From: Chlorokybus atmophyticus
Taxonomy: Eukaryota; Plantae; Mesostigma and Chlorokybus algae
Assembly: GCA_009103225.1 (NCBI GenBank)
Contig: RHPI01002836.1
Location: 301,515-358,349, forward strand
DNA length: 56,835 bases
Direction of reading: 5' to 3'
Shown: positions 2,191 to 41,714 of the stretch, piece by piece
How positions within the stretch are numbered: the stretch's first letter is position 1
Layout of the letters: every line of letters begins with the position of its first letter
Program-made: the position numbers and the translations under genes
The notes under the pieces: generated by a model
What the model was told of the DNA's origin: nothing
Seen by the model: the letters and a program-made list of their open reading frames with translations, nothing else
Database searches by the model: none

Positions 2191-2236
2191 TTTACTACAG
2201 GAGCAAGCGTTGGAGGTCAAGCTGCTTGCGTGGGAG

Positions 2237-6320: not shown

Positions 6321-6336
6321 ACTGCCTGCGTGGGAG

Positions 6337-7090: not shown

Positions 7091-7115
7091 CACATGAAAA
7101 AGTCAGCGCGAACCA
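7091..7115 (+). repeat. Left TIR of the giant CMC element
   Basis: CACATGAAAAAGTCAGCGCGAACCA. Confidence 0.85.
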
Positions 7116-7524
7116 TGCTCTAGTGGATGACACCAGTGTGGTCGTGAATGGTCAGACCACATGTGGCACACTGTCAGGACCACCTATGGCCTACATAACA
7201 GTTACAACCACATGTGGCCAGCCGTCATGACTATTCAGACCATACTGTATGTGGTCCGAATGCATACCATATATGGCCTGAATGTGGGTACCATATATGG
7301 TGATGGACTCACCACCACATGCATGTGGTCAGCAATCACGACCATACATGGTCAATCCATGAAATGAAAAGAATAGATTGTCACCGCCATGTGTGTTTGT
7401 GATGTTGTGACCATGCTGTCCTAGCGGTGAATCACACCATACTTGCAGGTTCATACCATGCATGGTCGGCCATGTGCTCCATGCAAGCGACCACCATCAA
7501 TGGTTGTGATGTTGTGACCTGATG
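7116..7524. repeat. Left subterminal repeats (ACCATG/CATGGT, TGTTGTGACC)
   Basis: Dense short motifs in both orientations; they resume after 9584 and recur at 33880-34580. Confidence 0.7.
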
Positions 7525-8093
7525 CACACGGATTGACGTTCGGGGACCATGCATGGTCCTTCCACGGACCCCGCGGGCCATACATGGTCCGTCCCCGCGG
7601 ACCACGAGTGTATGGTCCGCGAGGGACGGACCGTCCATGGTCCTTTTGGGGCCCCGATACCTGGCGCGCAAACGCGGACCACACATGGTCCGTGCCGCAC
7701 CTTGTGTGGTGCGGCACGGACCAGTACTCTACGCTGGTTCCTGGATGCGGACCAGGAGTGGGCCCGCGGTTCAGCGGCCCGGCAGCCGCGCACCGTACAT
7801 GGTCCGTGCCGCACCATGTATGGGGCGGCATGGACCAGCAATGTTGCTGGTTGGCGGCCCTGCAGGGCGCGCTACACGTGTACCATGACTGAAGTATCGT
7901 TTTTGCATGTACGAGTACATAGGTACATTGTGTATCATCATTTAATAAATGACAGGCCGCACCGACTGTCGCCGCTTACCATAAAGTGGACAGTCGCAGA
8001 TGGTCGGCGGCTGTCAATGTATATTGACAGCCGGCTGTCCATGTACAATTTAACTTGACAGCCGCCGACCAGTTGCGGCTGTCCACTTGTGGT

Positions 8094-8215
8094 CTATATA
8101 TGTATATATGGATATGTGTATACATATAAATATATGTGTATATATACACATATATATATATATATGCATATATATACATATGTATATATATATATATGTG
8201 TGTGTGTGTGTGCAT
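8094..8215. repeat. (TA)n/(TG)n microsatellite
   Basis: Directly visible. Confidence 0.9.
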
Positions 8216-9072
8216 GTGTTTAGGCTTAAGGCATTTACAAGAAAAAGTTGTCGACGTGTTGCGGCCGCAATTTGCAGCCGTGCAATTACTTCATATCTAT
8301 AATTTTATGTACATACATCGTTGTAAGTATATTGATGCGCGTACACATGTGCATTTAGACCTTTCATACGCAAAATTGTGTACATCTGAAGTAATGTATA
8401 ACAACATATATACACATATAGGAAGTATTAAAATTATTTACAATAAACATGGTTTAAACAAATTTATCAAATTTACATCAATGCGTAGCGTATGTTTATT
8501 ACATTACATATAGTTTGTTAGTAATTACATTATCATAATGTTCACAATCGTTAATATCATATCATGAATACATATGTTGATGATGTTCGTATGTTGCATT
8601 GCTAGGCGTAGTTTATGGTATGATTGGTTTTAATAATTTGTATGAAACGAAAGCGCAAGCAATGTCAGATGTTATGACTTAGCCTTACTTGTATAACCTC
8701 ACTAATGGCCTATAAAAGCCTCATGCGACCACAAAATCATCGACAGCCCGATAAGGTACACTGGCTGCATTGACAGTCGCAATTTGGCGACTATCACTAA
8801 GCATTGTCACAATGACAGCCCCTAACAAGTCTACAAATTGTACTGGCGTATTGACAACCGCCGAGTTCGCGGCTACCGATATGTAGTTTACCACCGTCCA
8901 TGTAACTGGTACAGCCTATGAATGCTACAGTTGCATGGGCTCAGCCTATGGGCCTATCAAAGTGACAATCTCCGACTGTCCATCGGCAATTACTGCCGCC
9001 GGCCAACAGTCGCCAAGCGGCGCATGCAATACACTATATGATATAGGTTGCCATGCGACCCTACCGGTACGT

Positions 9073-9144
9073 GCACTTGTAGCTTAGTGGTTAGGGTGTC
9101 GTCTTTGATATGCTAAAGGTGCTGGGTTCCAATCCGGTCGATGC
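9073..9144 (+). tRNA. Degenerate tRNA-like sequence (pseudogene or SINE head); anticodon unresolved
   Basis: 72 nt; A box TAGCTTAGTGG, B box GGTTCCAATCC; GCA...TGC ends; stems imperfect. Confidence 0.55.
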
Positions 9145-9450
9145 GTGTGTTCTTGACTAATCATTCCACTAACGCCGCGGAGCTGGCCGCGGCCTCGTGC
9201 GCCGCAGGTTGGGCGTGGCCGGTGCCGCCGGCAAAGATGTCTCAACTTTTACTGCATTTGCACTCATATGTACATTGGTCCATAATAAAATTCGGTCCAT
9301 GGTCCGCTGGCCGGACCAGTTATGATTGAAGTATTGCAATGATATGATTTAGTCCCTGGTCCGATGGCCGGACCATACCTGGTCCTGATGCAACAGTAAT
9401 CGGCCGGACTTTCAGTGGTCCGTACCAAGCGAGAATGGTACCATGCACGT

Positions 9451-10027
9451 GAAACTTGGACCATGAATGGTCCGACTGTCGATGAAAAACAGACCATGCA
9501 AGGTCCACCGATTTCATTTAGCAGGGGGAAATCCCGGTCCTGCGTCACGGACCATTCATGGTCCTTGAACGTCAATCCGTGTGATGGTGGTGGTGGTGAA
9601 AATTACAACCACAGTGCCAGTCCGCACCATGCATGGTCGTGATGTATGCTGGCGATGCCATGCTCACTCTGCAGAGGGGTTCGTGTTAGGTATTGGCAAA
9701 TCGCAGCACTGCAGTGATGCTCAGCTGTGTTATAAAAGCTGAAACTTGGACCATGAATGGTCCGACTGTCGATGAAAACAGACCATGCAAGGTCCACCGA
9801 TTTCATTTAGCAGGGGGAAATCCCGGTCCTGCGTCACGGACCATTCATGGTCCTTGAACGTCAATCCGTGTGATGGTGGTGGTGGTGAAAATTACAACCA
9901 CAGTGCCAGTCCGCACCATGCATGGTCGTGATGTATGCTTGCGATGCCATGCTCACTCTGCAGAGGGGTTCGTGTTAGGTATTGGCAAATCGCAGCACTG
10001 CAGTGATGCTCAGCTGTGTTATAAAAG
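9451..10027 (+). repeat. Tandem duplication (about 290-bp unit) containing the right TIR of the nested element
   Basis: 9451-9740 is repeated at 9741-10027. Confidence 0.95.
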
Positions 10028-10492
10028 TTGCAAACAGCAAAATGACCGGAGGGAGTTGATCTTGAGACCTAGGGATGCTAGCTTTAGTTCTGACCAGTAG
10101 ACTACCAATGCTAACACGCTAGTTTTGTAAAGTAACTCAAGTTATATTTAATGTTAAAGTCGGTTCTGATTGAGTGGCGGTGCACTCAGCGCAGTTAGGG
10201 TGACAGGTTCAAGGAGGTGGAAGCTGTCAAGCCCGTCGTCAGGTAGGTTGTTGATAGCTGTGGCAGGTGTCACCTGCTGTCTACATCCCATCATGCTCAG
10301 GGGTGAGAGGTTTGATGCCAGACGGCTGAAAGGTGGTCCTGCTTATGGTGTTTGTTGTTTAGCAAAGGCGTAGGGGCGGCCTGGGGTGTGGTTGTTGTGG
10401 CGTGTACCTGCAGTGTGGTTGTTGTTAGGCGGGGGCATAGGGGCGGCCAGGTATTGATTGTGGAGGGCCAGGGTAGGGGTGTCCTTGCCACC

Positions 10493-11264: not shown

Positions 11265-11702
11265 GTAGCCATGCACGTGTTGCTAAGCTTGACTGTACAT
11301 AAGTTTGTAGGCTTCGCAATATGAGCGAGGCAGCACGCGAGGTGTTTTTATACTTGTTTGTCATTGTATAGTGTAACATGACGGATGTGGCAGATGTGGT
11401 TTGTGCAACTGCGGACAGTGTTGAGTGCATGTTATCTCGGCACATCGCTGTGTGTTGTATGTTTCTGTGTGTGTCTGTGCAGAGGTCAATTCAGAGGTTG
11501 TGTCAAATGAGAGGTTGCCCACACCCTTGCAAAGCACGCACTGCATATTTCCATGTGCTCTAGTGCGTTGATAGTCAATGCACATTGTCGTTTGATGTGC
11601 AGATACAGTGTGTACAGTGTGTTCAATCAGCAGGCACATGCAAAGCACAACAAAAAGGCCACTTGACAACGGAACATATAACACACAGTGGTCATGCTGC
11701 CC

Positions 11703-11922
11703 NNNNNNNNNNNNNNNNNNNNNNNNNNNNNNNNNNNNNNNNNNNNNNNNNNNNNNNNNNNNNNNNNNNNNNNNNNNNNNNNNNNNNNNNNNNNNNNNNN
11801 NNNNNNNNNNNNNNNNNNNNNNNNNNNNNNNNNNNNNNNNNNNNNNNNNNNNNNNNNNNNNNNNNNNNNNNNNNNNNNNNNNNNNNNNNNNNNNNNNNNN
11901 NNNNNNNNNNNNNNNNNNNNNN
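11703..11922. other. Assembly gap (N run)
   Basis: 220 N. Confidence 1.
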
Positions 11923-11953
11923 CACCTCCTGTACACACCGCCCGTATACACGC

Positions 11954-13950
11954 CTAGCGGTAGCTGCCCAGACCTTTGTCATCGATGCGTCGCACCAGCT
12001 GCATGTCCTTGGGCATGATGGTGATGCGCTTGGCGTGGATGGCGCAAATGTTGCTGCAAGGAATACAGTGGGTAAGCTGCCACAACCAGAGTGCGGGTGT
12101 GAGGAGGCACTGACCTCCTCTGAAAAAGCTCCACAAGGCATGCCTCCGCTGCCTCTTAAAGCGCCGACATGGCTGAAGCCTGGTAGTTGTATTGCCCTCT
12201 ATCCCCGGTAAAGCCCGTGCTCACCTCTCGGACCAGGCGGCAGAATGGAAGCTGCACGCGATGGACTCAAAAAGTCATGCATCATGTGACGCGCAGCTGT
12301 TGGACATTGGCAAGGGCAGCATGCACTCACGCACCTTGGGAAGCAAGGTGTCACATGATGTCTTATACTTTCTGATTTCACGCAGCGCCACCGTACCGGG
12401 CCGGTATTTATGCGGCTTGCTGCTTTTGCGCATGCCCGTAGTCTGCTCCTCTTGCTGCGCCTGCTGCGCCGGCTCCCCATTCGCATGCTGTTGCTGCGAC
12501 TCGGTCTACCCCTGCTGCGCTGTTGCATTTTTAGGCAATGACTTCTTGCCGGTGCGTGAAAGCGCCTGCTGTGCTCCCTTTTTGGCCAACTTGCGTTGCT
12601 TCTTGGGGGTCCCCCTTGTGGCCATGCGCTCCTTCGGTGAGCCGCTTGCACCTAAGCTCCGGATCTTGCGCTTCTTGCCTTTGGCCGAGGGAGATGCGAT
12701 GTCCTGTTGTTGGCGCAGGGCTACTTTCGCCCGGTTAATCTCGAGGTCGCTTCCTTGCGTGCTGCGACTGCCTGCAAATACAACTTGCGGTTTGCCAACA
12801 CACGCTGTGCACCCCCAATGTAGCGCTCAATGGCAATTCGCAATGCAACCGAATTGATAGTTGGCGGGTGTGGCAACAGGTGACATACACCACCATTGCG
12901 TTGCTACAGCAGAGCGGAGTAAAGTGGTACATGATATTCGCACCTGGTGTTGGGCTTTTTTGGCAGCCATTAGGGACTCCTGGAATTCCTTGATTTTGAG
13001 CTTGATTGGGTCTTGTTTGCGTTTAGCCTCTCCCTTTTTTGACGGCCCAACACTCTTCAGGTCTGCCTGCGCCTTCTCAAGCATCTTCTTCAGCTTGTTG
13101 ACTTGATCAATGCACCTGCTCTTTGCGTTGTAGGCGGTGCTACTTTTCTTTTAATTGCTGCAGACGTGTGGCGAGTGTTGTGTCCACATCCGGATGCGTC
13201 GCTACATTGGCAGCTGGTTGAGGCTGCTCCACAACCCCTCCGAGGGCAGTCCGAGGGGAGTCCCTCGCCAATGTTCGCAGTCGGCGTGTCGTTGTTGCCA
13301 GAGGATCGTTGTGCAAGAGTGCGGCCTTGGAGTATGGTGTCAGCATCGACCGCGGCTGCATCCGCCGCTTCCTCCAGTGTCTTCCCCTCGGCCAGTAGTT
13401 CAAGGAAGGTCTGCCAGTAATTCGGATCGGTCTCCCCAGGCGCACTCTCTTTGCGGAGCTCCGCCAATGTGACAGTCCTGTGGGGGCGAAGTGGTGCCTG
13501 CGGTAGGGTGTTATCTGTACTGCCTGTGCAACCACCACTGCGTGCGCGTATGCCTCCGTGCATAAGCAGTGATGCATATGCGCAACTGCTGTTGCGGATG
13601 CATCAACAGGGATCCACACACATACACTTGACAAGAGTTGTGCATACCATGTTGGAGGTATTGTGGCTGTCCCCACGTGCAGTGTCGCCCAGGACCCTTC
13701 CTGCACCTTCCTCTGGCGGCTCCGCATCAACGTTGGTGGTGGCTTGGAGAGGCAACGCCTGCATGGCAACTACTGTGACTTACAACGGATTTGGACATGG
13801 CACATGCATTACAAGTGCACAATGGCAATTTCGACCAATGTGCATGACAGCAGCAGCATGGATAAGAGTCCGAACTCACGTCGTTGGTCAAGTCTGATGG
13901 GGCAGGTGGCTGGACCACATCTGCGTCCACCTGTTATCACGCAAGAGAGT
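11954..13950 (-). pseudogene. Multi-exon gene ending in a divergent histone H3 fold (H3 variant/CENH3-like) with a long N-terminal extension; disrupted
   Basis: Exons 12771-12335, 12251-12115 and 12053-11954 splice to [96 protein letters not shown]. Stops at 12508-12506 and 12158-12156. The 5' limit is uncertain. Confidence 0.85.
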
Positions 13951-14369
13951 GCTGCAACATTGTGATGAAATATGCAAACACTGTGCCACTATCTGGTAGA
14001 GACAGAAGGCATGCAAATGCGTATCAACTCACCGCGTGGTTCACTGATTGTGGGTAAGCTGCCTGGCCCACCAAGACCGCACCCTGTGATAGAACAAGAT
14101 ACACACCGCCCGATTGTGTGCCACGAACAAACAACAACAAACAAACAACAAACAACAACCCAATTAGGCTGGCACTCTGTTAACAGCTTGCATGCAGAAC
14201 ACCGAGGCTGTGTGTGCTGCGCCTTACCTGCTGGTTTACCTCCATGTCGCCTTCCGTCGCTGCATCCGCAAAGAGGCGGCGAATGGTTATGTGCCAATCG
14301 CCAACACCCGCCATAGCTGCCGTCCGCAGCCTGTGATTTGACAGGTTTGATAGCCAGTCAAGGTTTGCT

Positions 14370-16800
14370 GCTAGAGTTGGCAGATGGCGGCTTGAACGAG
14401 GCATAATCCCTTTGCACTCACAGCAAGAAAGGCGGCAAGAAGGGCGGCACACACCTGGACCATCTGAACAACAGCCGCTGCACGCAATGCCGCTGCTAAG
14501 CAAGAGCCGGGTGAGTCATGTTGGCTGCTTGTGTGCGTTCCTATGGCTGAATTGTAAAGGTAGCGTGCATGTGGCTGCTGTGAAGGCACACTGTGTGACT
14601 GTGAGGCCTACCTGGTGTTGAATGCTGTGTTGTATCTGTGCGGTTGTTTGTTAGGCGACTCACGCATGTTGAATGGAAGGTGTCTGTGCTGTTTGCTTGG
14701 AAGTCGTTGGTTAGGCTGTGTGGCGTGGGCTGCGATTGCTGTTGGAGGGGCTGCTTGTGTGTGCTGCTGTGCTGTGTTCTGGCATTTGCGTGCGCAATCA
14801 TCTGTGCGTGTGTATGCTCATCAGTATGCGTGAGTCTGCTTAGTTCTGTGCATGCTCGTGCGCCCGATTTCATGCAGAGTGTGAGTTGGTTTGTGTGTGC
14901 GCGTTGCGTGCGTGCGTGTGCGTGCGTGCGTGCGTGCGTGCGTGTGTGTGTGTGTGTGTGCGTGTGTGTGCGTGTGTGTGCGTTGTCTTGTGTGTCTCTT
15001 GTAATGCTGGCAATGCACCATCTCGCACCCTGATGGCCGCTGTGCAGATGACACCGTGCGAACTTGGGGGGCTGCAACTCTGGGAGTTTCCAATTCCGGA
15101 ACCGATTTGGGAGGAGGAGGACTTGCTCCTTGACATCACGGACGTGCCGGAGTTGAAGGACATAGCGGGACAGGCAGACACAACATGGTGGATTGATGAG
15201 GTCCACTCCCTGCACCAAATCCGTGCTTTGGCATTTCCTTCGGTGATGCGCGGGTTGCAGCAATTTGACGGACTACTCCAGAAGTTAGAACCTGTGGAGA
15301 ACAAGGACTGCATGCTGCTTTGGAAAGATGTGTACGATGTCGCCAAGACCATGGCATGAGCATCCGCCAAGCGTCTATGCGACCTGCGAGTGTTGCGCGA
15401 CGCGATATCTCGCATGGTGGAGTTCCATAACAACACACGCATACACGCATACTTCGCACAGTATGCAGTGCTCTACGCTTCGCACTTCCACCGATGAGTG
15501 TGCGTTCCGGATGATGTCGGGGACTATGATGCATTGAAAGCACAGATGCTCTTGGTGACGCTGTTCTGACTACCTGCCTCGCATGAGGAAGTCCTCCGCC
15601 CCACTGCGTTGCGCAGTCAACACCCGTGAAGAGAGGTCGCGGAACATGGGCCTACTTCCCTTCTTCATTGTCAGCTGGGATACGGTGGTTTTGTGGATGA
15701 ATTTATTGCTAGCGGTCTCATTGGCACGCAACTGTCTATGCCTAACAGTTCTACATCGCGCAGATGACACCGAGAGAGCATACGTGCGTCAGCGCGACTT
15801 CACCTGGTGGCAGGAAGGAGATTCATCTCGCGCGTCTCGAGTCTTGCAGGCTATCGGCCGCCTGCTGTGGAATGTTAGGAATATTGATCTCATAGCCTCT
15901 GCCCATGTGCGCATGCCGGACTTCCAGGCCTCGGTCAATCACGCACGTGCGAAACTCCGACTGCCGAGACTTAGCTTCACGGGCTACGAGGTGGTTGAGG
16001 AGCCGCCGCCGCTAGACCTGACACCGCTGATGCAGACTTAGCGCCGTGCTGTACTCACACCAATTACGCAGGCACTCGAGAGGGCGGATGAAGAGGAGGG
16101 ACCAAGGGACCCCTGCGTAAGCGACGCGTTGGAGTCAGCGGTGCCTGCTGGTCAAGGAAGCCCTGTGCTTCATCTCGTTGGGATGATTAACACGGGCATC
16201 CTGTGTGTGCACAACAAATTGAGCCCGCGACATCGGTGGAGGCGGTTCGCTCTGCGGGCTCTCACGTGGGCGAATCCCGAGTGTGTGGCAAGCGACATCC
16301 ACTCCCTACGAAGTGCTGGTGCATCAAGGCCTCTTGGAGCACCTGTTTGGTGTGCATGTGGTCAACACGCCAGGTGAGCATTGTTTGAAAGTCCTCTCAT
16401 CTTGCGGATTGCCAATCGCCTGCCATTGCAACTGTTTCAACACAACTTGGGCAATTCGTGTGACCTTTTAGCGATGCTGGAGGTCGTGCTGGAGGATGTG
16501 ATGGACATGCCGGAGGGCGAGCGCAAGGGTGCGTGGCCGCTTACAGGTGTCGTCCTACCAGCCTCTTTTACGCCACTACACCTAGCAGCGGACATCAAAG
16601 CAAGAGCCCACAAAGCAATGCACATGAGCCCGCACGTCAGCATGAGGCTGGGAATGAGCAGCGAACATGGCGACTCACCGGTGCAGGTGAAGGAAGAAAG
16701 AGCTGAAGACCCCGACACACCCATCGCTGGCTTTGAAGGGCCCCCAGAGACGCTTCAATACTGCCATGTAACGACAAGATATCTGCCTAATATACATTCC
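14370..16800 (+). pseudogene. Unidentified multi-exon cargo gene (gene X), disrupted
   Basis: Protein-like frames 15048-15359, 15583-16041 and 16381-16890 linked across stops/frameshifts, with GT..AG junctions; no recognisable domain. Confidence 0.45.
14900..14990. repeat. (GCGT)n/(GT)n microsatellite in a putative intron
   Basis: Directly visible. Confidence 0.85.
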
Positions 16801-16989
16801 CTCTCCCCTGCCCTGTCTACTGCCTGCCTGCTGCTGCAATGCATGTCTAGGTCATTATCCTATATCTTGGTGGTTGTGGGCTGTGTATAGGTAGGTCCTA
16901 GCACTGCTCTGGGCCCCCCCAAATCTGTGTGGCTAATACATTTCTGCGTGTGGCCTGCTAGCACACTACTTTGCACCCTCTTTGCTTTA

Positions 16990-17740
16990 CATTCCCACTT
17001 GTACTATAGTGTATACTACGCCAGTTGCACTTGTAGCACACTCCCACACTACTCTTATAGTGCCACTTCTACAACACTCTACTACACTTCAACACTTCAC
17101 AACACTTGTATAGTGTACTTGTGCAAAGAGGGTGTATGTTAACATACACACTCTAGAGATCTGTGCACAATTATGAACGTTCCTTTGCACTGTAGTGATA
17201 TAAGTACATATATTGAAGTACACTACACTAATATATTGAGGGTTGTGCCACTTCTACAACACTCTCCTTTGCATTGTAGTGATATAAGTGCATATATTGA
17301 AGTACACTACACCAATATATTGAGCGTTGTGCCACTTCTACAACACTCTACTACACTTCAACACTCCACACTTGTATAGTGTACTTGTGCACAGATGGTG
17401 TATGTTAACATACACCCTCTGTGCACAAGTATGAACGTTCCTTACATTGTACATTAGAAGTACATATATTAAAGTACACCAATGCTATAGTGCCACTTCT
17501 ACAACACTCTACTACACTTCAACACTCCACTACAATTGTATGTACATATTGTGCATATAGGTGCACGTCACGGTGTACGTTCTTATAAACCTACGTGTGA
17601 TAGTACATATATGGCTATTAGTAGTTCGTGCTTGCACCAATCGTATACTACTTTAGTTGCACCTATTAGGTACTACACTACTGCTGTAGTGCCACTTCTA
17701 CAACACTCTACTACACTTTGACACTCCACTACCCTGTATG
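16990..17740 (+). repeat. AT-rich degenerate repeat block (GTGCCACTTCTACAACACTCTACTACACTT units; one 84-bp tandem pair)
   Basis: Unit recurs near 17060, 17245, 17330, 17490 and 17690. Confidence 0.8.
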
Positions 17741-18226
17741 GCTATATTGCAATATACAAACGTACATGACTAATATAGTTGTGCTTGAACTGTGCATATG
17801 GTGTATACCGCTATAGTTACGTGTGTAATACACTTCTACATTAATATACACAGTTCACGTAGGTCGTAATTCCTCTCCTACACTACATTTGTAGTGTTGT
17901 ATACTATACATGTATGCATATAGTTTGTGTATACACGATTATGAGTCTGCTTCAACAGCACGATACTCCACTTTTATTCCCTACTTAAGTTGACTGTTCA
18001 ACCATCCTGGAAGGTTATATTATGATTAATATATGTTCCTCGTGTTGTACAAGGAGTTTAAACTGGCTGCATCTTTGGTTCAAAGTGATCAATCCATTGC
18101 ATTTGCACAGGTCACTCATTTGCATGTGGTCACTGTACACATAATGGTTATAATGGCTGCGGGCTTTGTGAAAGGTTTTGCGGTGTGGTTAAGGGGAAGG
18201 GTTAAGGATAGGGCTAGGGGCATACA

Positions 18227-18295
18227 GTTAGGGTTAGGGTTAGGGCTAGGGTTAGGGTTAGGGTTAGGGCTAGGGCTAGGGTTAGGGTTAGGGCT
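18227..18295 (+). repeat. Interstitial telomere-like (TTAGGG/CTAGGG)n
   Basis: About 11 hexamer units; a short tract also at about 18728-18740. Confidence 0.9.
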
Positions 18296-23600: not shown

Positions 23601-23701
23601 CGGTGAGCAGCTTCGGTAGCACATCGTCCAACGTCAACTCCGATGATGACATCTCCAGCAGGGTTGCGACGACCTCATACTCTGCTGGTAGCCCTGCAAC
23701 A
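20698..23701 (-). mobile_element. Copia family B copy 2: gag C-terminus, protease, integrase, RT, partial RNase H; 3' end deleted
   Basis: CHWCGWTGHIVKEC, WVVDSG, WH..FGH, YTPQQNGAAER, YVDD. Homology to copy 1 stops at GCAGCATC (20698). Confidence 0.95.
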
Positions 23702-24102
23702 ACTCAGCTCAAGAGAAGGTGACGAAGAGCGTGTCACATGCGAGTGGTGGAGTGATTCCATGTGTGGAGGTTGCTGGTGGTGTTAAGAAGGCTGAAGGTG
23801 CAGTTCCGGAGCCCGTGGGAGCCAAAGGAGGCGTTGGCATCAGCAAGGACAAGAAGGAGAAGCATGGTGGTGGTGGTGTGCAGGACGTTGCCGAGAGTGA
23901 GCACGTGGGAGCACATGCAAATGACCATGAGAGTTGCAATAAGGGTGTGCAAGTGAAGAGCTTCAAGGAGGCGCTCATGAGAGGTGCGGGAAGTGTTTTT
24001 AAGATGGTTGGAAGAGCAAAGGATGGCGTGGGAGTTCGTCGCACAGAAGTACGCAAGGAGTTGGCATCGAAGGTGTCAAAGGCCAAGCTGCCCGCGTGGG
24101 AG

Positions 24103-24571
24103 TGTTGAGGATATTCTTGTATCCGGTCAGCTTGCCTTGTGGATAAGAATAGCCGCGAGAAGATTCAGGCGCAAGAAGGTTCAAGTCGAGAAAGGTCCAG
24201 GCGAGGACTTCAGTCGAGAAGGTTCCAGGCGCGGAGTCGAGTCCGGAGTCTGGAGACTTCCAGGCGCTGTAGAAGAAACGTTGTAGCTCGGTGGTTACGT
24301 CATTGTATGGCGCGTGTTGTAGCTTGTTGAAAAGCTCTTGAAAGTAGCTACGTGTTGCAACTTGGAGCGCAGAAATCGGTTGAGTGTAGAAGTCGTGGTG
24401 GCTTCTAGAGTAGACAGGTGCAGAACTGGCGGGTATAAAAGCCCGCGGTGTGACTTTGTTGTAATCCTTAGAAAGCCTTTTGGATCAGCCTTGTGTGTAT
24501 GCTCTGGTAGAGTGTGTGTACTTGTGCTTGCACCAACTCCATGCATGGTCAGTAGTGTCCGAATCTCAACA
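24103..24571 (+). repeat. Family A 3' LTR (in the inverted segment)
   Basis: Preceded by PPT GCGTGGGAG and followed by TSD AGCCT. Confidence 0.95.
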
Positions 24572-24613
24572 AGCCTTGGGTGTCAACTGCAAGTGAAGGC
24601 AGGCACGACAAAG

Positions 24614-25058
24614 ATGGAGGCGACCTATGACAAGGGGCAGATTGCAAAGCTGGACACCGACAACTACAACACATGGTGCGTGGAGATGAAGGCCTTGCTC
24701 ATCCATAAGAAGGTGTGGAAGTATGTTGATCCGAAGGCACCACCACCAACACCAGGAGCGAACACTGTGTGGTCAGAGCATTCAGTAGAAGCACACTCTT
24801 TGCTTGTGTTGAACTGCAAACCGCATCACTTTCCCATGCTCACTGCATGTGATGATGGTAGACAAGCTTGGGAAAAGCTATCAGCCGTTTTCAGAGCCAA
24901 GAACAAGCCAGAAAATTGCAGCTACGCAAGCAGCTGAGCGCACTCAGGAAGAAGGCAGCAGAACCCATCACAAAGTATGTTGCACGCGCGAGAGAGCTGT
25001 GGGCGGACCTTATCAACGTCGGCCACGACATGGGGGAGACGGAGGTTGTGCTGGCGCT
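24614..25058 (+). pseudogene. Family B gag N-terminus (in the inverted segment)
   Basis: MEATYDKGQIAKLDTDNYNTWCVEMKALL, typical Copia gag start; one frameshift. Confidence 0.85.
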
Positions 25059-25829
25059 CCCTTATGAGTAACAGGCTCGACCTTGGCCTTCTTCTTCATT
25101 CTCTTTACAACCGGTGCTGACTTGGACACCTCCACCTTCGTCTTCTTGTGCACGTCCGCACCTGTGACGGTGCTCGTGCCTTGTCACCTGTGAGTTGGTC
25201 CAATCCACAACCCTCTCACCAAGACACGGTATTCACACCGGAACCTTGCCCCCTCTGCCAAGCACACACGCGCGCCCCGCCACTCGCGTACGCACGCGCA
25301 TGCGCTTGAAGCTACACACCGACTTGTGTAGCGCCTTGGATCGTCACACAAGCAAGCACACACCAGTGGACACACGCTAGCAACCTCTTCTAGCCACCAC
25401 CAAGCTTGCACACAAGAAACTAGGGAGCTAAAGGTTGTATTGCAAGTTGTAGAATGTCACTTTTATACCTACCAGTCTGCACATGCTACTGTCTAGACGA
25501 TTCTAGCGCTAGACGGAACTAGAAGCTAAGATATTCTTGCATAATCTTGTAGTAAACTTTTAGACCTTTCCAACGCACCAAAGATCTCCTAATTTGCTGC
25601 TCATATGGTCAAGTTATACTACTTGGCGCCAGGCCCTTCCAGAAATCTGGTCGAGCCCTTCTCGACTGGCCCTCCGTTTTCTGGCACCTTCCGGACTGGT
25701 CTTGGGGCCCCGGTCGATATCCGCGGCAGACTCATAACTCGCCGATATCCGCCACAAGTCATTAAAAACATGTACCTTACAAATAAGGCCTAAAACGGCC
25801 ATGAAAATCACAGAATTTGGCCTTGACTG

Positions 25830-28800
25830 TTACACTCCTCCCCCCCCAGGTGAGCTTCGTCCTCGAAGCTCGCGAGGTTGTCGTCGAGCAAGATAGGCAC
25901 GCACAACGTCTTGAGCATTAGTCAAGTGTGCCTCTGGCTCCCAGGATGCTTCATGCAACGGATAGCCCTTCCATTTCACTAAGAACTTGCGTACGCCATG
26001 CACAAACTTCTCACCAAGGATGTCTTCTACCTCCCACTCGGGTTCACCGTCTGTGCCAACTTCGGGGGGCGGCCTTTCTGGTGGTTGTCCTCGATATGCT
26101 TTTAGAAGGGAGACGTGAAAAACGGGGTGCACACGCATGGTGTCGGGTAGCTCCAACTTGTACGCCACGTCCGAGATAACTTTGCTGACCTTAAATGGTC
26201 CCAACCAGCGTTCATTCAGCTTGCGAACTCCCGTACGCACCTGGACGTGCTTCGCGGAGAGTAACACAATGTCGCCTTCCTGAAACGTGAGGTGTCGGCG
26301 ATGCGCGTCCGCGTACTGCTTCTGCCGATTTTGTGCCACCAATAACGCATCCCTAGCTGCCTTGTTAATGTCCGCGCACTTTGTAAGGAAGTCATTAGCT
26401 GCCTCCACACGCACGTCATGTCGTCGCGGTGTCCATGCCGTCAACGGTGTCAATGGATGTTGCCCGTAGTTCATAAGGAAGGGAGTGACACCTGTGCTTG
26501 CATTGTGGTGGTTGTTGATCGCAAACTCAACCAACTCAAGCAGCTCCTCCCAATTGTCTTGTCGCGCGTTAACGTAGCAACGCAGCATGTCCTCGATCAC
26601 ACGGTTGGCCCGCTCCGTTTGCCCATCAGTTTGCGGGTGGAATGCCGTGCTAAACTTCAGTGTGGTACCCAGTGCACTATGCAGCGCCTCCCAAAACTTA
26701 CTTGTAAAGCGCGGGTCGCGATCACTCACAATGCTTCGTGGTAATCCATGAGAACGAAATACATGCTTCACGAACAAGCGTGCTGCCTCCGGTGCCGTGC
26801 AAGACTCACTACACGGTGCCAAGCGTACCATTTTGCTGGTTTTATCGACGAACACAAGTATAGCGTCGTACCCTTCTTTTGTCTTTGGTAGCCCCGTGAT
26901 AAAGTCCATGGTAACTTGCTCCCACTTGGACAATGGCACAGGGAGAGGTTGCAGCAACCCACCTGGCTTTTGGTTGCTTGCCTTCACCCTTTGGCATGCG
27001 TCGCACAACGCCACGTAGTCGCGCACATCGCGATGCATCTCTCGCCAGTAAAAACGCTGTTTTAAGCTTGCCAAAGTCCTTTCCAACCCTTGGTGACCAG
27101 CAATGGGCACATCATGAGCTTCCTTCAGCAACTTCACACGGATATGCGCGACGTTGGGGATGTACAAGCGCCCATGGTGCCACAGCAGCCCGTCGCGCAT
27201 TGACCAGTGCCCACTTGTGTCCGTAGCTGTATTTTCCAGCTCTTGCAACACTTTCATACCCTCCGTGTCTTCACGAAGCACTTGCCGAATCTGGTCGGTC
27301 CACTCGGGCTGCACTTGAGCGAGTGCCTCAATTGCATTAAGCCGGCTCAGCGCGTCAGCAACACCATTTGACGTACCGGGCTTGTACTTGATATCGAAGT
27401 CAAAAAGTTGAAAGAACTCAAGCCATCGAGCTTGTCTGCGACTCAGATGAGGTTGTGTTTGTAAGTACCTCAGTGGAGAGTGATCCGTCTCAAGCACGAA
27501 CTTTTTGCCTTCCAAAAAACAACGCCATTGTCGTAGCGCCATGACTTGCGCTAAAAGTTCCTTCTCGTGCACGGGGTAATTCAGCTCCGCACCACGCATC
27601 TTCTTGCTGAAGAATGCTACTGGTTGAAGGCCGTTGCCATGGTCTTGCTGCAAAACAGCTCCTACGGCTGTGTCGGATGCGTCGCAAGCCAAAATAAATG
27701 TCTTTTCCATGTTGGGGTGAGCCAGGACTGGTGCCTCCGTCAGCGCCTTCTTCAACGCAGCAAATGCATGTTCCTCTGTTGCTGACCAGCTCCAATGCTT
27801 TCCCTTCTTGAGTAGGGTAGTCAAGGGAGCAGCTATGCGCGAAAACCCCATGATAAACTTGCGATAATACCCCGCAAGGCCTAAAAAGGACATCACCTCC
27901 TTTACATTGGTCGGGGCAGCCCACTCGCGCACCACCTGCACTTTGTTGGGGTCCGGCTTGATGCCTTCATGCGACACAATGTGGCCTAGGTACTCCACCT
28001 CTCGAAGCAAGAATTTGCACTTTTGTAGCTGGGCGTACAACTTGTGTTCGCGCAAACGCTGCAACACGCGCCGTAGAAGTGCCACGTGCTCCTCCTTTGT
28101 TGTCGCGTACACCAAAATGTCGTCGAGGTACACGAGGACTCCCTTACCAATCAAGTCAGCAAAAACGCTGTTCATAAGCGTTTGAAATGTTGCCGGTGCG
28201 TTCGTAAGTCCGAAGGACATGACCAACCACTCGTAGTGCCCATAACGTGTGTTAAAAGCTGTTTTCTCCACATCCTCGGGCGCGATGCGAATTTGGTGAT
28301 AACCTCCAGCAAGATCAAGTGTTGTGAAGTACTGCGCACCTTGCAATTGCTCCAGCAACTCGTCGATACGTGGGAGTGGAAAGCAATTCCTCTTCGTGAT
28401 GTTGTTGAGAGCTCGGTAGTCGACGCACATGCGCAAGCTCCCGTTCTTCTTTCGTACAAACAAAATAGGTGCACCATAGGGGGACTTACTAGGCCTGATG
28501 TAGCCTCTTTTCAGCAAGTCCGCCACCTGCCTCTCGGCCTCTTCCAGTTCCAAAGGTGACAACTTGTATACGGGTCGATACGGTGGCTTGTGCACGCCCT
28601 CAATCAGCTCCACACGGTGGTCTACGCTCCGTGGAGGTGGTAGACCAGATGGAAGTCCGTCCACCATGATATCTTGGTATTCTTTAACAAGTTTACACAC
28701 CTCGGGGTCCATAGTAGCCGTCTGAACATCGTCACTCAGCTCCGGTGCTGACTTTGCAGTGTTTTCGCGCACCACGCACAACCATGCAGCCTTTGCCTTC

Positions 28801-29363
28801 CGTGGAGACAATAACTTCCTCGATTGCACATAAGAGATCTGGGCAATTGTCGTACCACCTAATTGTGCGTGCCGCGCCTCGATGACGTCCGATGCAGCTT
28901 GAATGGACTCTCCACCGTTTCGCTCGATGGTGAGCACGCGCTTCCTCCAATTGATGGCTGGATTATGTTGCCATAGCCACGGTAGTCCCAAAATCCCATC
29001 AAACCCGTTCCGTAGGGTGATGCAGCAAAACCGCATGCTCTCCTTCATCTTCCCAATGCAAACGCACAACTCTTTGGTCATAAACGCAGCGCCATCACCT
29101 TCAGAGGGTGGCTCTCCATCAGCGAGCTTCACTTCACCTCCTCGTAATGACGAAAGCCAACCGTAACGCCGCGCAATATCAATACTCATAAAGTTGCTGT
29201 TGGCACCGCTATCAATCATGAGCTTACACTCTCTCCATCGTCCTTGGTCATCGCAAATGTGTGCTCGAAGCCCGAAGTACTTTGTTGTCTCCTCGTTTGC
29301 ATAACTCACAACCATTGGCGCGTTCAAAGCCATCTCTTCTTGCTTGTTTAATGGAAATGTCAC
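25830..29363 (-). CDS. pol: Chromovirus Pol: protease, RT, RNase H, integrase, chromodomain
   Basis: 1177-aa ORF: MIDSGA, YLDD, CDAS, H-H-C-C zinc finger, FHPQTDGQTER, GPF, WEVEDIL..FLVKWKGY..SWEP. Confidence 0.97.
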   Translation of the reverse strand: MTFPLNKQEEMALNAPMVVSYANEETTKYFGLRAHICDDQGRWRECKLMIDSGANSNFMSIDIARRYGWLSSLRGGEVKLADGEPPSEGDGAAFMTKELCVCIGKMKESMRFCCITLRNGFDGILGLPWLWQHNPAINWRKRVLTIERNGGESIQAASDVIEARHAQLGGTTIAQISYVQSRKLLSPRKAKAAWLCVVRENTAKSAPELSDDVQTATMDPEVCKLVKEYQDIMVDGLPSGLPPPRSVDHRVELIEGVHKPPYRPVYKLSPLELEEAERQVADLLKRGYIRPSKSPYGAPILFVRKKNGSLRMCVDYRALNNITKRNCFPLPRIDELLEQLQGAQYFTTLDLAGGYHQIRIAPEDVEKTAFNTRYGHYEWLVMSFGLTNAPATFQTLMNSVFADLIGKGVLVYLDDILVYATTKEEHVALLRRVLQRLREHKLYAQLQKCKFLLREVEYLGHIVSHEGIKPDPNKVQVVREWAAPTNVKEVMSFLGLAGYYRKFIMGFSRIAAPLTTLLKKGKHWSWSATEEHAFAALKKALTEAPVLAHPNMEKTFILACDASDTAVGAVLQQDHGNGLQPVAFFSKKMRGAELNYPVHEKELLAQVMALRQWRCFLEGKKFVLETDHSPLRYLQTQPHLSRRQARWLEFFQLFDFDIKYKPGTSNGVADALSRLNAIEALAQVQPEWTDQIRQVLREDTEGMKVLQELENTATDTSGHWSMRDGLLWHHGRLYIPNVAHIRVKLLKEAHDVPIAGHQGLERTLASLKQRFYWREMHRDVRDYVALCDACQRVKASNQKPGGLLQPLPVPLSKWEQVTMDFITGLPKTKEGYDAILVFVDKTSKMVRLAPCSESCTAPEAARLFVKHVFRSHGLPRSIVSDRDPRFTSKFWEALHSALGTTLKFSTAFHPQTDGQTERANRVIEDMLRCYVNARQDNWEELLELVEFAINNHHNASTGVTPFLMNYGQHPLTPLTAWTPRRHDVRVEAANDFLTKCADINKAARDALLVAQNRQKQYADAHRRHLTFQEGDIVLLSAKHVQVRTGVRKLNERWLGPFKVSKVISDVAYKLELPDTMRVHPVFHVSLLKAYRGQPPERPPPEVGTDGEPEWEVEDILGEKFVHGVRKFLVKWKGYPLHEASWEPEAHLTNAQDVVRAYLARRQPRELRGRSSPGGGGV

Positions 29364-29416
29364 AGCATCCGTCCGTGCATGAGGCTCCTTCCTATCCCCA
29401 GCAGTAGCCTCCTCAC

Positions 29417-30493
29417 CTACTGGGGGAAGTCGTTTTCCTGCTCCACGCCATTTTGCTCCATGGTGTTGACGCGACGATCACGGCGAGGGTTGCCATCCGG
29501 TGTTGGCCTTTGCGTGCTTCGTTTGGGGCATCCGTACGCCAAATGCTCCGTCGACCCACACGCATAACACTTGCGCACACCTTTACCTCTTTCACCACGT
29601 CCGCCGTGCTTCGCCTCACTTCCATGCGTGTGTATAGCACCCACCTCCATTGGTGCAGGCCCAGAGTCAGCTCCACCTCCATTGGCAAGTGCTGGACTTG
29701 GTTCTCCTCGTCTCCATGCATGTTGAAAGCCTCCCCGGGGCTGATCACCATGCCTTTGCCTCCAGTCAGTGTTTCTTGTGGTGGACTTGAAGTACAACGC
29801 GTCGAGACGCTCCGCGATGCGTATAGCCTCCGCGAGTGTCTTCGGGTCCCGTAGCTCCACTTCTTTACGCCCCAAAGGTTTTAAACCACGTGTATACCTG
29901 TCCAACTGCTCCTCCTCGGTCATATTGGGTATGGACATCACCAATCGCTGAAACGCGGCCGTGTACGCCATCACCGACCCCATTTGCACAAGGGCTGCAA
30001 GTTTGTCGCGTGCGGCCTTCACGCTCTCAACGGGAACAAATTGATGCCTGACCTCCAGTGCCAACTCTTCCATGGTGGTCAATGGTAGCGCCAACCCGTT
30101 TGCAACACGCGTACATCGATGCCTCCACCACACAAGTGCTGCACCTTCAAGCAATGTCGCTGCAACCTCCACGTGCAGATGCGTGGGCACCTCCGTGAGC
30201 TTCAACCAAGACGATACTTGAAAAATCCATTCATCCACTGCATCTCCATCACGTTGACCCCTGAATGGCTTGGGCTTTGGCACCTTCACATGCACGCGCG
30301 AGCTTGATGCCATGGGAATTTGTACACGCGCCATCGCATGCTCATACGCCTCGCGTTGTGCTTGTGCCGCCGCTTGAGTGTGATGAAGCTCTTCCCTCAG
30401 TGCCAAGATGGCAGCTTGAAGCTCTTCCATGCGAGCATCCTCCATCTCCACTAACACACTACACTCCGCTTCCGAGTGTAAACGCCCACACAC
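29417..30493 (-). CDS. gag: Chromovirus Gag with CCHC zinc knuckle
   Basis: 358-aa ORF; capsid-like region; CYACGSTEHLAYGC. Confidence 0.95.
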   Translation of the reverse strand: MCGRLHSEAECSVLVEMEDARMEELQAAILALREELHHTQAAAQAQREAYEHAMARVQIPMASSSRVHVKVPKPKPFRGQRDGDAVDEWIFQVSSWLKLTEVPTHLHVEVAATLLEGAALVWWRHRCTRVANGLALPLTTMEELALEVRHQFVPVESVKAARDKLAALVQMGSVMAYTAAFQRLVMSIPNMTEEEQLDRYTRGLKPLGRKEVELRDPKTLAEAIRIAERLDALYFKSTTRNTDWRQRHGDQPRGGFQHAWRRGEPSPALANGGGADSGPAPMEVGAIHTHGSEAKHGGRGERGKGVRKCYACGSTEHLAYGCPKRSTQRPTPDGNPRRDRRVNTMEQNGVEQENDFPQ

Positions 30494-31204
30494 TTCCTAT
30501 CTCACCTTCGTAAACCGTGCTCCGATACCAGTTGTGACGGTGCTCGTGCCTTGTCACCTGTGAGTTGGTCCAATCCACAACCCTCTCACCAAGACACGGT
30601 ATTCACACCGGAACCTTGCCCCCTCTGCCAAGCACACACGCGCGCCCCGCCACTCGCGTACGCACGCGCTTGCGCTCGAAGCTACACACCGACTTGTGTA
30701 GCGCCTTGGATCGTCACACAAGCAAGCACACACCAGTGGACACACGCTAGCAACCTCTTCTAGCCACCACCAAGCTTGCACACAAGAAACTAGTGAGCTA
30801 AAGGTTGTATTGCAAGTTGTAGAATGTCACTTTTATACCTACCAGTCTGCACATGCTACTGTCTAGACGATTCTAGCGCTAGACGGAACTAGAAGCTAAG
30901 ATATTCTTGCATAATCTTGTAGTAAACTTTTAGACCTTTCCAACGCACCAAAGATCTCCTAATTTGCTGCTCATATGGTCAAGTTATACTACTTGGCGCC
31001 AGGCCCTTCCAGAAATCTGGTCGAGCCCTTCTCGACTGGCCCTCCGTTTTCTGGCACCTTCCGGACTGGTCTTGGGGCCCCGGTCGATATCCGCGGCAGA
31101 CTCATAACTCGCCGATATCCGCCACAAGTCATTAAAAACATGTACCTTACAAATAAGGCCTAAAACGGCCATGAAAATCACAGAATTCGGCCTTGACTGT
31201 TACA

Positions 31205-33017
31205 GCACCCTTGACCTCCTTAATAATGTAGAGCCCTCCAACGTTGATGCCAACCAACTCTGTGACACCACGCAGCACTACCCTTCCTATGTCCCCACTA
31301 AACACTGTAACAGCACCAACTCTCGCCGCGATGCGCACAGAGAATAGGCTAACCTCTAGCCCTGGGACATACAAAACCTCTCTCAACAACATTTGCCTCG
31401 TCCTTCCTCCAACCGAGGACAGGATTTTGGCTTCTCCTACACCAATCGCGAAGACCTCCGTCTTGCCGAACTTCACCTTCATAGGTTTTTCCAAGACCTT
31501 GTACTTCCCCAACTTCTCACGATCACCCGTCATATGCCTCGTGCAACCCGAGTCCAGCACCCAACCAGCTGCCTCACCATCCGTTGTTGCATGAAAGGCA
31601 ATAGGCGTTTCTCGAACACGTCCCGTCATGGCATGATGCTTCTCTTCACCACGCTCCTCTTCGTGCTGCTTCCTCATCGAGCAATGCACCCTGATGTGAC
31701 CCTTCTTCCCGCAATAGTAGCAGACCCTGTCACTCCTTGACGCTCCTCTACCACCACCACTAGAACCGCCACCATCACCACTGAACGCCCAGACCCATGC
31801 TGAAAACGATCAGTACCTCTTCCTGAAGTCGCTGACAAAGCCAACGCCTCTGGGCCTTCCTCATGCTTCTTCGCCAGCCTCGACTCCACCTGCAGCAATC
31901 TTGGAACCACCTTGTCCACCGTGGGTTCTGCCTCCAAGCCCTCCAAGACCGTGATTATCGTGTCATAGTCTTCAGGCAACCCAGACAGTACTTGCCACAC
32001 CAATTCGGACTCTTTCACCTCATAGCCAACGCCTTGAAGGTCCTTCTGCAACTCTCGTGCACGCGACACATACTTGGTAAGAGGCTCCGCTGCGCCTTGC
32101 TTCTTCAACCAGCGAGCTCTCTCTTTAGCTGCACCTTCCTCGCGCTATTCTTCGCCTTGAAGTGCGATGCCAATTTCTCCCAAGCTTCTCGTGCAGTCTT
32201 GCAGCCATCCACCATCACCAAGTGATGATCCTTCATGTTGAGACCGATCAGGGCAAGCGCTCTCCCACTTTGCTGCTTAAACACCGAACTCTGCCTTGTA
32301 GACATAGGGTCAGCCTCCTCCGGGTCCACCCACTCCCACAAGTCTTTGTGTACCAGCAACATCTTCATGCGCACGCTCCATGTGTTGTAGTTGTCCATGT
32401 CCAAAGGCTCCACGGTCACCTTGTCGTAGTTGGTTGCCATCTTCCAGGACTCAACCTCACAAGATTTAGCTAGAACTCCTTACCTAGCCTACTGCCGTTA
32501 TCACGCCTCTTGACACTGGCTAGACCAGCGTAGTGTGGGCCCATAACCTGTCGAGATTCGGACACTACTGACCATGCATGGAGTTGGTGCAAGCACAAGT
32601 ACACACACTCTACCAGAGCATACACACAAGGCTGATCCAAAAGGCTTTCTAAGGATTACAACAAAGTCACACCGCGGGCTTTTATACCCGCCAGTTCTGC
32701 ACCTGTCTACTCTAGAAGCCACCACGACTTCTACACTCAACCGATTTCTGCGCTCCAAGTTGCAACACGTAGCTACTTTTGAGAGCTTTCCAACAAGCTA
32801 CAACACGCGCCATACAATGACGTAACCACCGAGCTACAACGTTTCTTCTACAGCGCCTGGAAGTCTCCAGACTCCGGACTCGACTCCGCGCCTGGAACCT
32901 TCTCGACTGAAGTCCTCGCCTGGACCTTTCTCGACTGGAACCTTCTCGCGCCTGAATCTTCTCGCGGCTATTCTTATCCACAAGGCAAGCTGACCGGATA
33001 CAAGAATATCCTCAACA
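31205..33017 (-). mobile_element. Family A element 5' part: LTR, PBS, gag, zinc knuckle, protease
   Basis: LTR 33017-32549; gag from 32440 (MATNYDKVTVEPLD); CYYCGKKGHIRVHC; WVLDSGCTRHM; frameshifted. Confidence 0.9.
32527..32548 (-). promoter_or_regulatory. Copia-type PBS complementary to the tRNAiMet anticodon arm
   Basis: GGTTATGGGCCCAC directly after the LTR; same motif at 33106-33085 for family B. Confidence 0.85.
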
Positions 33018-33106
33018 AGGCTCTGCTACCAACAAGCTACCGTAGTGTAACTACTATGCACACAAGCTAGTCTCACACTCCTCAAGCGTAGTGTGGGCCC
33101 ATAACC

Positions 33107-33530
33107 TGTTGAAGTACTAGCATGCACATGTAGTTGAGGCAAGCATGGACACACAGAGACAGAGCTACCACCACCAGAGCATACACAAGTCACATCACAT
33201 TCATCTATTACAAGTTGTCCGCTGGTTCTTATACCAGCCAGTTACACACACGTCTACGTTTGCAAGCACTGCGTAAGCTATACTTTGCCTTTTAACGCGC
33301 TCTAAGCTGCGTTGTTTTGCTTACAACCATAACTTCTCAACAAGCTCTTACACGCCTGATATGAGTAAATATACGCGGACATATGAAGCAGTTAGTAAGG
33401 CTCCAGTCTGGAGTCCGGAGTCTGGTCCGACGACGCCATCTTGCTAAGTCCGGACCTAGTGCTCGTCCTTACGACCTTCTACTCCTGTGTGGAGGGTCGA
33501 TGCTGATCGTATGTAGGAATACTCTCAACA
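33107..33530 (-). repeat. Family B copy 2 5' LTR (424 bp)
   Basis: Homologous to 2237-2700; followed by the PBS. Confidence 0.9.
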
Positions 33531-33758
33531 AAGGACCCTAAGCTGCTGTTTACCACTTGTGAGCGAGTCGACGAGTTGCTGAGGGTTGCATTTGACAAGC
33601 GCTGGGTCAAGTGGGAGGGAGACCACGAGGTCGTGTGGTGGTCAACGAAGAAGAAGCCAGGAGTGCAGTGGCGTGCTGAGTATCTGATGCCTGGCAAGGC
33701 AGCGCGCAGGGTTGCTTTGTGCGTGTTGCCTCAAGCTAATGCTGTAGTGGGGCTATAA
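33531..33758 (+). pseudogene. 3' remnant of an unidentified cargo ORF truncated by the B insertion/deletion
   Basis: Open frame from the LTR edge: KDPKLLFTTCERVDELLRVAFDKRWVKWEG... Confidence 0.35.
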
Positions 33759-33879
33759 GCAGCAAATTTGGCTAGCAGATTGTACATACATAATGTACTT
33801 GCACCGATAAACCATATCTTGGCCTTCTGCAAGTTTCTCTCCGGTTGCATTGCGAGTTGCCAACTGGCGTTGTTGTGCG

Positions 33880-34580
33880 GTTCTTGTGCATGCTTTTGAC
33901 AATTCGCATGACGATGAAACCATGCATGGTATAACTGCCACAAACAATAACGGTTTCTCGTGGTGATGCATCTTCCCAACACTGGCACAACAGTTGTGCC
34001 ATACTCGTCGCGAAAGTATGCACCATGCATGTCGTGATGGTTGGACCATGGTGGTAATGAATGTTGTGACCAACACTGGTGATGGCGTTCATGCCATACT
34101 GGTGATCGCGGTTTCCACCACACATGGCGTGATGGTTAGGCCGCCATGGTGACAACCGTCATGACCATGACTGGTATGAATGTAATGTCACAATGGTGTC
34201 TATCGGCATAACCATTAATGGTGTGACGGTCATGCCGCAGTGGCCATGGATACCAGTTACAGCCATACCAGTGTCGTCCGCGGACCAGCAACGAGGTGGT
34301 AACACACCATGCATGGTATGAAGATCACAGCCCATGGTGGTCTTAACCGTTTGCACCACAGCTGGTGTAACCTCACCACCATGACTGGTGCGGATTTATT
34401 TGCCACCATACTGTCGGTGAATCTTGGTTATAATCACACCAGTATGGTCCGCGAAGCAGCAACGAGGTGATAACATTGCACCATTAATGGTCGTCGGACG
34501 TTGCCACCATACTGTAGGCACATGGTCGTGAGTCTGGTCCTGACCCGTAATCTGGTGGTCACAACAGTTGTAACCACCTG
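33880..34580. repeat. Right subterminal repeats of the giant CMC element
   Basis: ACCATG/CATGGT and TGTTGTGACC motifs as on the left end. Confidence 0.7.
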
Positions 34581-34605
34581 TGGTTCGCGCTGACTTTTCC
34601 ATGTG
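34581..34605 (-). repeat. Right TIR of the giant CMC element
   Basis: Reverse complement CACATGGAAAAGTCAGCGCGAACCA; followed by CAC. Confidence 0.85.
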
Positions 34606-41713: not shown

Positions 41714-41714
41714 N

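Follow-up and report, generated by a model that had tools for sequence, protein, structure and literature searches.

The stretch of DNA analyzed here (hereafter the window) was 56,835 nt long and came from the alga Chlorokybus atmophyticus (assembly GCA_009103225.1, contig RHPI01002836.1, positions 301,515 to 358,349 of the forward strand). Positions 7091–34605 of the window probably represent a single transposon of the CACTA/En-Spm-like (CMC) type, old, dead and low in copy number, which carried a captured long-headed histone H3-like gene and a second open reading frame (ORF), here named gene X, and the interior of which decayed, was invaded by other elements and was partly lost. The grouping of the element with En/Spm (CACTA) was based on terminal inverted repeats (TIRs) starting with CAC, a putative duplication of 3 bp, arrays of subterminal words and a transposase remnant, some relatives of which weakly match tnp2. 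The original prediction, made from the letters of the window, had described a TIR-bounded, retroelement-invaded CMC/CACTA-like element, and the TIRs, subterminal repeats, flank match and transposase remnant were all in line with this. The coordinates of the features are listed in Table 1.

Termini, subterminal words and transposase remnant

The two TIRs both began with CACATG and were complementary at 24 of 25 positions, which confirmed the single mismatch reported earlier. The 25-mer was found at only these two sites in the window, even when three mismatches were allowed (0.00 sites expected by chance). The termini were bordered by the same CAC trinucleotide, the two copies being 27.5 kb apart as had been stated. 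The flanks matched at 3 bp and differed at 2, 4 and 5 bp, and thus a 3-bp duplication was the only fitting length. Elements of the CMC type produce target-site duplications (TSDs) of 2–4 bp (3 bp for CACTA proper) and have TIRs beginning with 5′-CAC.

Both ends were strongly enriched in the palindrome ACCA-N4-TGGT, which typically reads GACCATGCATGGTC. It had 25 matches in the window compared with 1.29 expected, and 22 of them fell within the end regions 7290–7689, 9372–9926 and 33919–34584. The subterminal motifs that had been claimed for both ends were therefore real. The left end contained two motif blocks, and the motif-free stretch between them is possibly a small foreign insert. The word GACWGTC, of the type seen in this stretch, was not enriched across the window (9 matches, 8.15 expected). 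A tRNA-like part of the same stretch (9075–9150) carried a T-loop-like motif, GGTTCCAATCC. Scans of this part with ARAGORN and Rfam gave no call, and it may be the head of a short interspersed nuclear element or a decayed tRNA.

No second copy of the element was found within the window. To the right of the element, a direct repeat of 1756 bp was observed (42946–44701 and 44715–46470, 99.9% alike and 13 bp apart), and each of its copies contained one ACCA-N4-TGGT word as well as a word 19/25 identical to the TIR (at 44224 and 45993).

An internal transposase had been predicted, and its homology was indeed present on the minus strand (20697–19435), but the gene was truncated and broken. In a tblastn search with all 108 relatives, homology in the window was confined to 20718–19435 on this strand. 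Three parts of a 996-aa relative could be aligned: residues 404–500 to 20697–20392, with a DTMH motif; residues 537–557 to 20114–20052, in a different frame that has a TAG codon at 20096–20094; and residues 573–769 to 20016–19435, with the conserved D, W, and E of 'YWCYVYER.' The minus-strand translation of 20640–19300 accordingly showed the motifs ..FDTMHVLAEN.. and ..YWCYVYERKV.., and we take DTMH and YER to contain residues D2 and E of the CACTA catalytic triad. The ORF at 19191–18487 may be the C-terminal end of the transposase. About 400 N-terminal residues, including the first catalytic D, were found nowhere in the window by tblastn, which agreed with the internal deletion proposed earlier. 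With a nonsense codon, a frameshift and a missing N-terminus, the transposase gene reads as a truncated pseudogene.

The relatives were obtained with a 283-aa piece of the transposase, which matched 108 proteins in HMMER; for 27 of these, E was ≤ 1e-10. The best match (E 2e-23) showed 35% identity over ~190 residues of the 996-aa protein. At the top were proteins annotated as hypothetical from a fern, Adiantum nelumboides, and a liverwort, Riccia sorocarpa; UniRef calls one of them 'Transposase'. Residues D102, W113, and E118 of the piece were near-invariant among the relatives. Weak, sub-threshold matches to the Pfam family Transposase_21 (tnp2) were detected in 8 of 43 aligned relatives (best E 3e-06), and these always lay N-terminal of the part aligning to the window. 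A word-indexed protein search with the same piece returned no match inside its length limits. At the loci of the nearest fern and liverwort transposases, no homologue of gene X or of the H3-like gene was found, and no inverted pair starting with CAC was present less than 10 kb from the transposase gene.

The H3-like gene, gene X and further copies of their block

The histone fold of the H3-like gene was encoded on the minus strand by several exons separated by GT..AG introns: the alphaN exon ended at 12335, the alpha2 exon covered 12179–12115, and the last exon covered 12053–11954. Pfam PF00125 (Histone) was recognized above the cut-off on 12220–11957 (alpha3; E 1.1e-07), and on 12505–12278 (alphaN) at E 2.6e-05 with 24.9 bits, slightly below the 26.4-bit cut-off. 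Canonical H3 contigs from public runs aligned to 11997–12053 only and diverged precisely at the exon border. A Lys-rich/coiled-coil stretch (13085–12509) continued into the frame of the histone fold across a GTATGT..CAG intron. This indicated that the coiled-coil gene, which had been counted separately, forms the head of one long-headed H3 gene. The upper limit of this gene is uncertain, and an ORF extends up to 13563.

The H3-like gene contained a TAG codon in the head (12508–12506) and a TAA codon in alpha2 (12158–12156), and its frame was disturbed at the exon that follows ..LLPK. Judged from its sequence, it is a pseudogene, with no ORF able to yield the full protein. The TAA in alpha2 and the TAG in the transposase both replaced a Q of the relatives (in the former case the Q of H3), a position that would fit C-to-T decay.

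The 443-codon frame of gene X was interrupted by in-frame stops at only two places, 16039–16041 (TAG) and 16375–16377, whereas ~21 stops would be expected at random. This indicated that gene X was coding until recently, and in the present copy it is a pseudogene. The pieces of gene X had no match in Pfam, and the ESM Atlas, queried with two pieces, gave no usable match and low recognition values. Gene X, on the plus strand, was arranged tail-to-tail with the transposase gene on the minus strand, and it may be the family's own second or accessory ORF instead of cargo. The DNA between gene X and the transposase end also contained an interstitial telomere-like array (18187–18295), in which ~11 units of GTTAGG (= TTAGGG) were mixed with a 24-bp variant.

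At least four non-transposase coding units had been proposed for the element. Only the H3-like gene and gene X could be verified, both of them dead. The remnant at 33531, which had been listed as a further unit, had no identifiable homology, matching neither a Pfam family nor anything in the window, and it showed no similarity to the chromodomain of the Gypsy element described below. The ORFs left of the assembly gap and the flanking ORFs likewise had no Pfam match.

The block that comprises the H3-like gene and gene X occurred more than once in the same organism. One public run (X1; 355 million letters, kind unrecorded, Logan contigs of at most 311 nt) was compared over 11923–17900 (5978 letters) and contained 13% of the words of this region. 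Some X1 contigs were identical to the window (12265–12501, 16311–16606, and 16726–17036), and five others were diverged (Table 1). In one diverged contig, the G at 16039 turned the TAG of gene X into GAG. Joints were observed from 14304 to 15000 and from 16792 to 16988. The identical and the diverged contigs had similar depths (~3–5), which indicated that the same organism has at least one further copy of the H3–gene X block, 87–95% similar. This further copy (12170–17213) included intergenic DNA, and the joint from 14304 to 15000 linked its H3 side with its gene X side. Such a make-up would be as expected of a transposon interior; the X1 contigs covered the interior and not the termini.

Another explanation was considered here: the H3-like gene, alone or together with gene X, would be part of another mobile element (e.g., a Helitron or some other DNA transposon) that inserted here, with the CACTA-like element as its mere landing site. 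The block is repeated elsewhere, the repeated unit was seen without its ends, and a small insert with GACAGTC-type words is probably already present at 7900–9300. However, neither a second pair of termini nor a Rep/helicase ORF nor a TSD was found around the block, and we regard this explanation as unlikely.

It is also conceivable that the window holds a decayed example of a working transposon-encoded chromatin system, the intact masters of which would employ an H3 variant of their own, together with gene X, for the chromatin of the element or for target choice. The H3-like gene retains its introns and histone fold, and the block was copied together with its intergenic DNA. However, every gene in the window copy was broken, and the paralogous contigs differed by frameshifting indels (1 and 5 nt), with no excess of third-codon-position changes among the listed differences, although in gene X these sites were too few to reveal selection. 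Such a system is very improbable. It is similarly hard to believe that the accessory genes conserved and expressed in intact family members include a long-headed, CENH3-like H3 gene and gene X. If they did, the element would bring along a nucleosome variant of its own, with which it could, e.g., mark its own chromatin or home to centromeric regions. A dead CACTA-like element with passengers was preferred for this copy.

Retroelement cluster, continuity and history of the element

The transposase remnant was followed on its right by a retroelement cluster. Nested insertions had been predicted here, and this held for the Ty3/Gypsy chromovirus, which, with its long terminal repeats (LTRs) and TSD, was the only clean nested insertion within the cluster. 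It encoded gag and a 1177-aa pol (protease, reverse transcriptase, RNase H, and integrase) with a C-terminal chromodomain. The Copia parts did not follow this pattern. The pol fragment of Copia X belonged to the same family as positions 500–1864 of the window, with 96.7% nucleotide identity ending exactly at 20698. At the junction 20698/20697, the Copia X identity ended and the transposase homology began, and the absence of an LTR and a TSD there indicated a deletion or rearrangement breakpoint.

The Copia Y/Z part of the cluster was rearranged. The Copia Z ORF resumed to the left of the Gypsy element, where it ran into a Lys-rich tail and terminated at 25015, and it contained no integrase or reverse transcriptase. 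Two 478-bp 'A' repeats (24103–24580 and 32540–33017) were inverted relative to each other and 98.7% alike, and the repeat was also found at positions 1–474 of the window. One of the two copies came after a run resembling a polypurine tract (PPT), and the other after a different LTR plus 90 bp. The gag parts adjoining the two copies were merely 60% identical in protein. Inversion, tandem elements with a common LTR, and recombination are candidates for the origin of this arrangement.

Another Copia element was observed outside the cluster (3131–6803), with pol ORFs at 3131–4939 and 4936–6144 and a probable 3′ LTR from 6337. It ended ~290 bp before the left TIR, and its protein was 55–60% identical to the family of Copia X and window 1–2700.

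The element's own DNA amounted to 14,682 bp, the 220-N assembly gap included, in addition to the 12,833 bp of the cluster. It would be ~13.3 kb should 7900–9300 be a foreign insert. The value of 14,682 bp was close to the ~12 kb calculated earlier after removal of the inserts, and the total length is an estimate, since the element spans the gap. The gap was situated in non-coding DNA, 31 nt past the stop codon of the minus-strand H3-like gene (11954–11956). It was crossed by no credible reading frame, the contig ends on its two sides showed no overlap, and the passenger genes and the left TIR lay on opposite sides of it. The scaffold join is nevertheless likely to be correct, because the termini were correctly oriented and their flanks matched. 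Single Ns were also present in the window at 22064 and 22488, both inside the Copia X fragment, and at 41714.

The gap bears directly on whether the two ends belong together. An alternative is that two unrelated end fragments (7091–~10035 and 33531–34605) were joined by a rearrangement or a wrong scaffold join, and that no single transposon ever carried the intervening DNA with the H3-like gene and gene X. Under this alternative, the unbridged gap and at least two breakpoints without TSD inside the element would be accounted for; the sequence common to the left and right ends was limited to the 25-bp TIR and the short motif, and a flank match of 3 bp is weak evidence. However, the termini were correctly inverted with matching CAC flanks, and a transposase remnant of the matching superfamily lay between them. 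Moreover, a 21-nt word (20/21 identical) was common to an intron of the H3-like gene (12831–12851, minus strand) and the right subterminal region (33842–33862, plus strand), with no further occurrence in the window, and it tied the interior to the right end. The joining of unrelated ends was accordingly considered improbable.

Several points still weigh against a single CACTA-like transposon. The TIR pair was known from one copy, that of the window, and neither a second TIR-bounded copy nor an empty site was seen in the material covered (the window and the X1 contigs of the interior). The match of the CAC flanks was just 3 bp long, with a chance of 1/64, and came from one element copy. As the gap was unbridged, the left end was tied to the interior by the scaffold alone. 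The retroelement cluster was joined by breakpoints, which indicated a large rearrangement inside the TIR pair. The run X1 was small and of unrecorded kind, with contigs of at most 311 nt. The transposase fragment itself had no Pfam match, and no long ORF of the window gave a transposase match in Pfam. An AlphaFold model of the transposase piece was of moderate quality (predicted local distance difference test score 64.5, all-helical) and had no Foldseek match in the PDB at E ≤ 0.001.

If a single CACTA-like transposon is accepted, the following history can be proposed. The own DNA of the present copy runs from the left end through the H3-like gene, gene X and the transposase gene to the right end, gene X being on the plus strand and the other two genes on the minus strand. 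In a working copy, a DDE transposase would bind the CAC... termini, excise the element, and reinsert it with a 3-bp duplication, and a second protein recognizing the ACCA-N4-TGGT words under both ends may have helped transposition. The H3-like gene would most simply be a host gene captured by this CACTA-like family (transduplication) and copied along with it, and gene X would be an accessory ORF of the family or a second passenger. After a presumed single insertion event, nonsense codons would have arisen in all three genes, and the transposase region would have received retroelements. The first ~400 residues of the transposase and the ends of the Copia elements would have been lost through at least one deletion or rearrangement, and the Gypsy chromovirus would have inserted last.

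Comparison with known systems and remaining features

The element resembled the En/Spm (CACTA) elements of plants in its CAC termini, putative 3-bp duplication, long subterminal word arrays, and a second ORF beside the transposase. A large DDE transposase may be a common feature as well, the putative one here being distantly related to Pfam Transposase_21/tnp2. However, the Chlorokybus terminus was CACATG, not CACTA, and the subterminal word was palindromic. The Chlorokybus transposase was ~35% identical to its nearest relatives (fern and liverwort) and fell under the Pfam threshold, and the second ORF resembled neither TnpA nor anything else.

The CACAT terminus and the cargo load had been considered unusual. 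The terminus lies within the CAC... rule, and enlarged En/Spm elements of 16–20 kb with 4–5 ORFs were described in a red alga in 2013 (as cited in PMC6431247). By that description, the red-algal elements are likewise algal, of CACTA type, far above the usual size, and provided with extra ORFs, whereas the Chlorokybus element had two verifiable extra units, both broken.

In Dothideomycete fungi, histone H3 was captured and amplified by hAT DNA transposons (PMC6710886). In both cases an H3 coding sequence was inside a cut-and-paste transposon and was multiplied, with most copies inactivated. In contrast to the fungal hAT carrier, the Chlorokybus carrier was CACTA-like, and its H3 was divergent, intron-bearing, and long-headed. 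The copy number in Chlorokybus also looked low, and no repeat-induced point mutation (RIP) process is known in the alga. The genome paper of C. atmophyticus reported 31.3% repeats and left CACTA unmentioned in its main text (PMC7027972).

As interpreted here, the element is an ordinary kind of CACTA-type transposon with a mildly interesting histone passenger. It adds a documented case from a streptophyte alga that is among the earliest to branch off; the subterminal word of this CACTA-type element is distinctive and palindromic, the transposase lineage also occurs in ferns and liverworts, and a histone H3 gene of divergent sequence is present inside. The dead, rearranged copy is chiefly useful as a seed (TIR, motif, and gene order) for a genome-wide census.

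Table 1. Features of the element and its flanks, with the diverged X1 contigs (window coordinates).
Feature	Position	Strand	Remarks
Putative 3-bp TSD, left copy	7088–7090		CAC; identical to 34606–34608
Left TIR	7091–7115	+	Begins CACATG; 24/25 complementary to right TIR
Left subterminal region	7116–7900		Palindromic ACCA-N4-TGGT / CCA-N4-TGG words
Motif-free stretch of left end	7900–9300		GACAGTC/GACAGCC words, (TA)n array 8095–8197, tRNA-like piece ~9075–9150
Second subterminal motif block	9372–10035		Includes 289-bp tandem duplication 9450–10035, 98%
Assembly gap	11703–11922		220 N; parts left 4.6 kb (with left TIR) from interior
Long-headed histone H3-like pseudogene	11954–13085	-	Lys-rich/coiled-coil head and histone-fold exons
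Diverged X1 contig	12170–12352		11 differences and indels
Diverged X1 contig	14507–14658		9 differences
Gene X	14990–16887	+	Open stretch to 15356, then 443-codon frame 15559–16887
Diverged X1 contig	15561–15735		22 differences
Diverged X1 contig	15894–16088		9 differences, 5-nt and 3-nt indels; G for T at 16039
Diverged X1 contig	16988–17213		25 differences
Repeats between gene X and transposase	17020–17740		84-bp repeats and GTTAAC-centred hairpins
Transposase remnant	18487–20697	-	Homology 20697–20392, 20114–20052 (other frame), 20016–19435
Retroelement cluster	20698–33530		12,833 bp
Copia X pol fragment	20698–23454	-	Protease barrel, integrase, reverse transcriptase, part of RNase H; no LTRs
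Copia LTR-like 'A' repeat and gag N-terminal part	24103–24934	+	Begins TGTTGAGG, PPT-like run before; inverted twin of 33017–32540
Ty3/Gypsy chromovirus, intact-looking	25163–31204	-	672-bp LTRs 99.4% alike, TG..CA ends, 5-bp TSD GCACC
Copia Z	31205–33530	-	LTR 33530–33107, 'A' repeat 33017–32540, gag, protease barrel
33531 remnant	33531–33755	+	75-codon open stretch
Right subterminal region	33919–34580		Nine ACCA-N4-TGGT words
Right TIR	34581–34605	-	Begins CACATG; pairs with 7091–7115
Putative 3-bp TSD, right copy	34606–34608		CAC

Two further observations were made to the right of the element. A 597-N gap was present at 38147–38743, and it accounted for the apparent low-GC bin at 38–40 kb. 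A 5.1-kb stretch (50498–55629) matched its own reverse complement at 99.7% and formed a large palindrome or inverted duplication.

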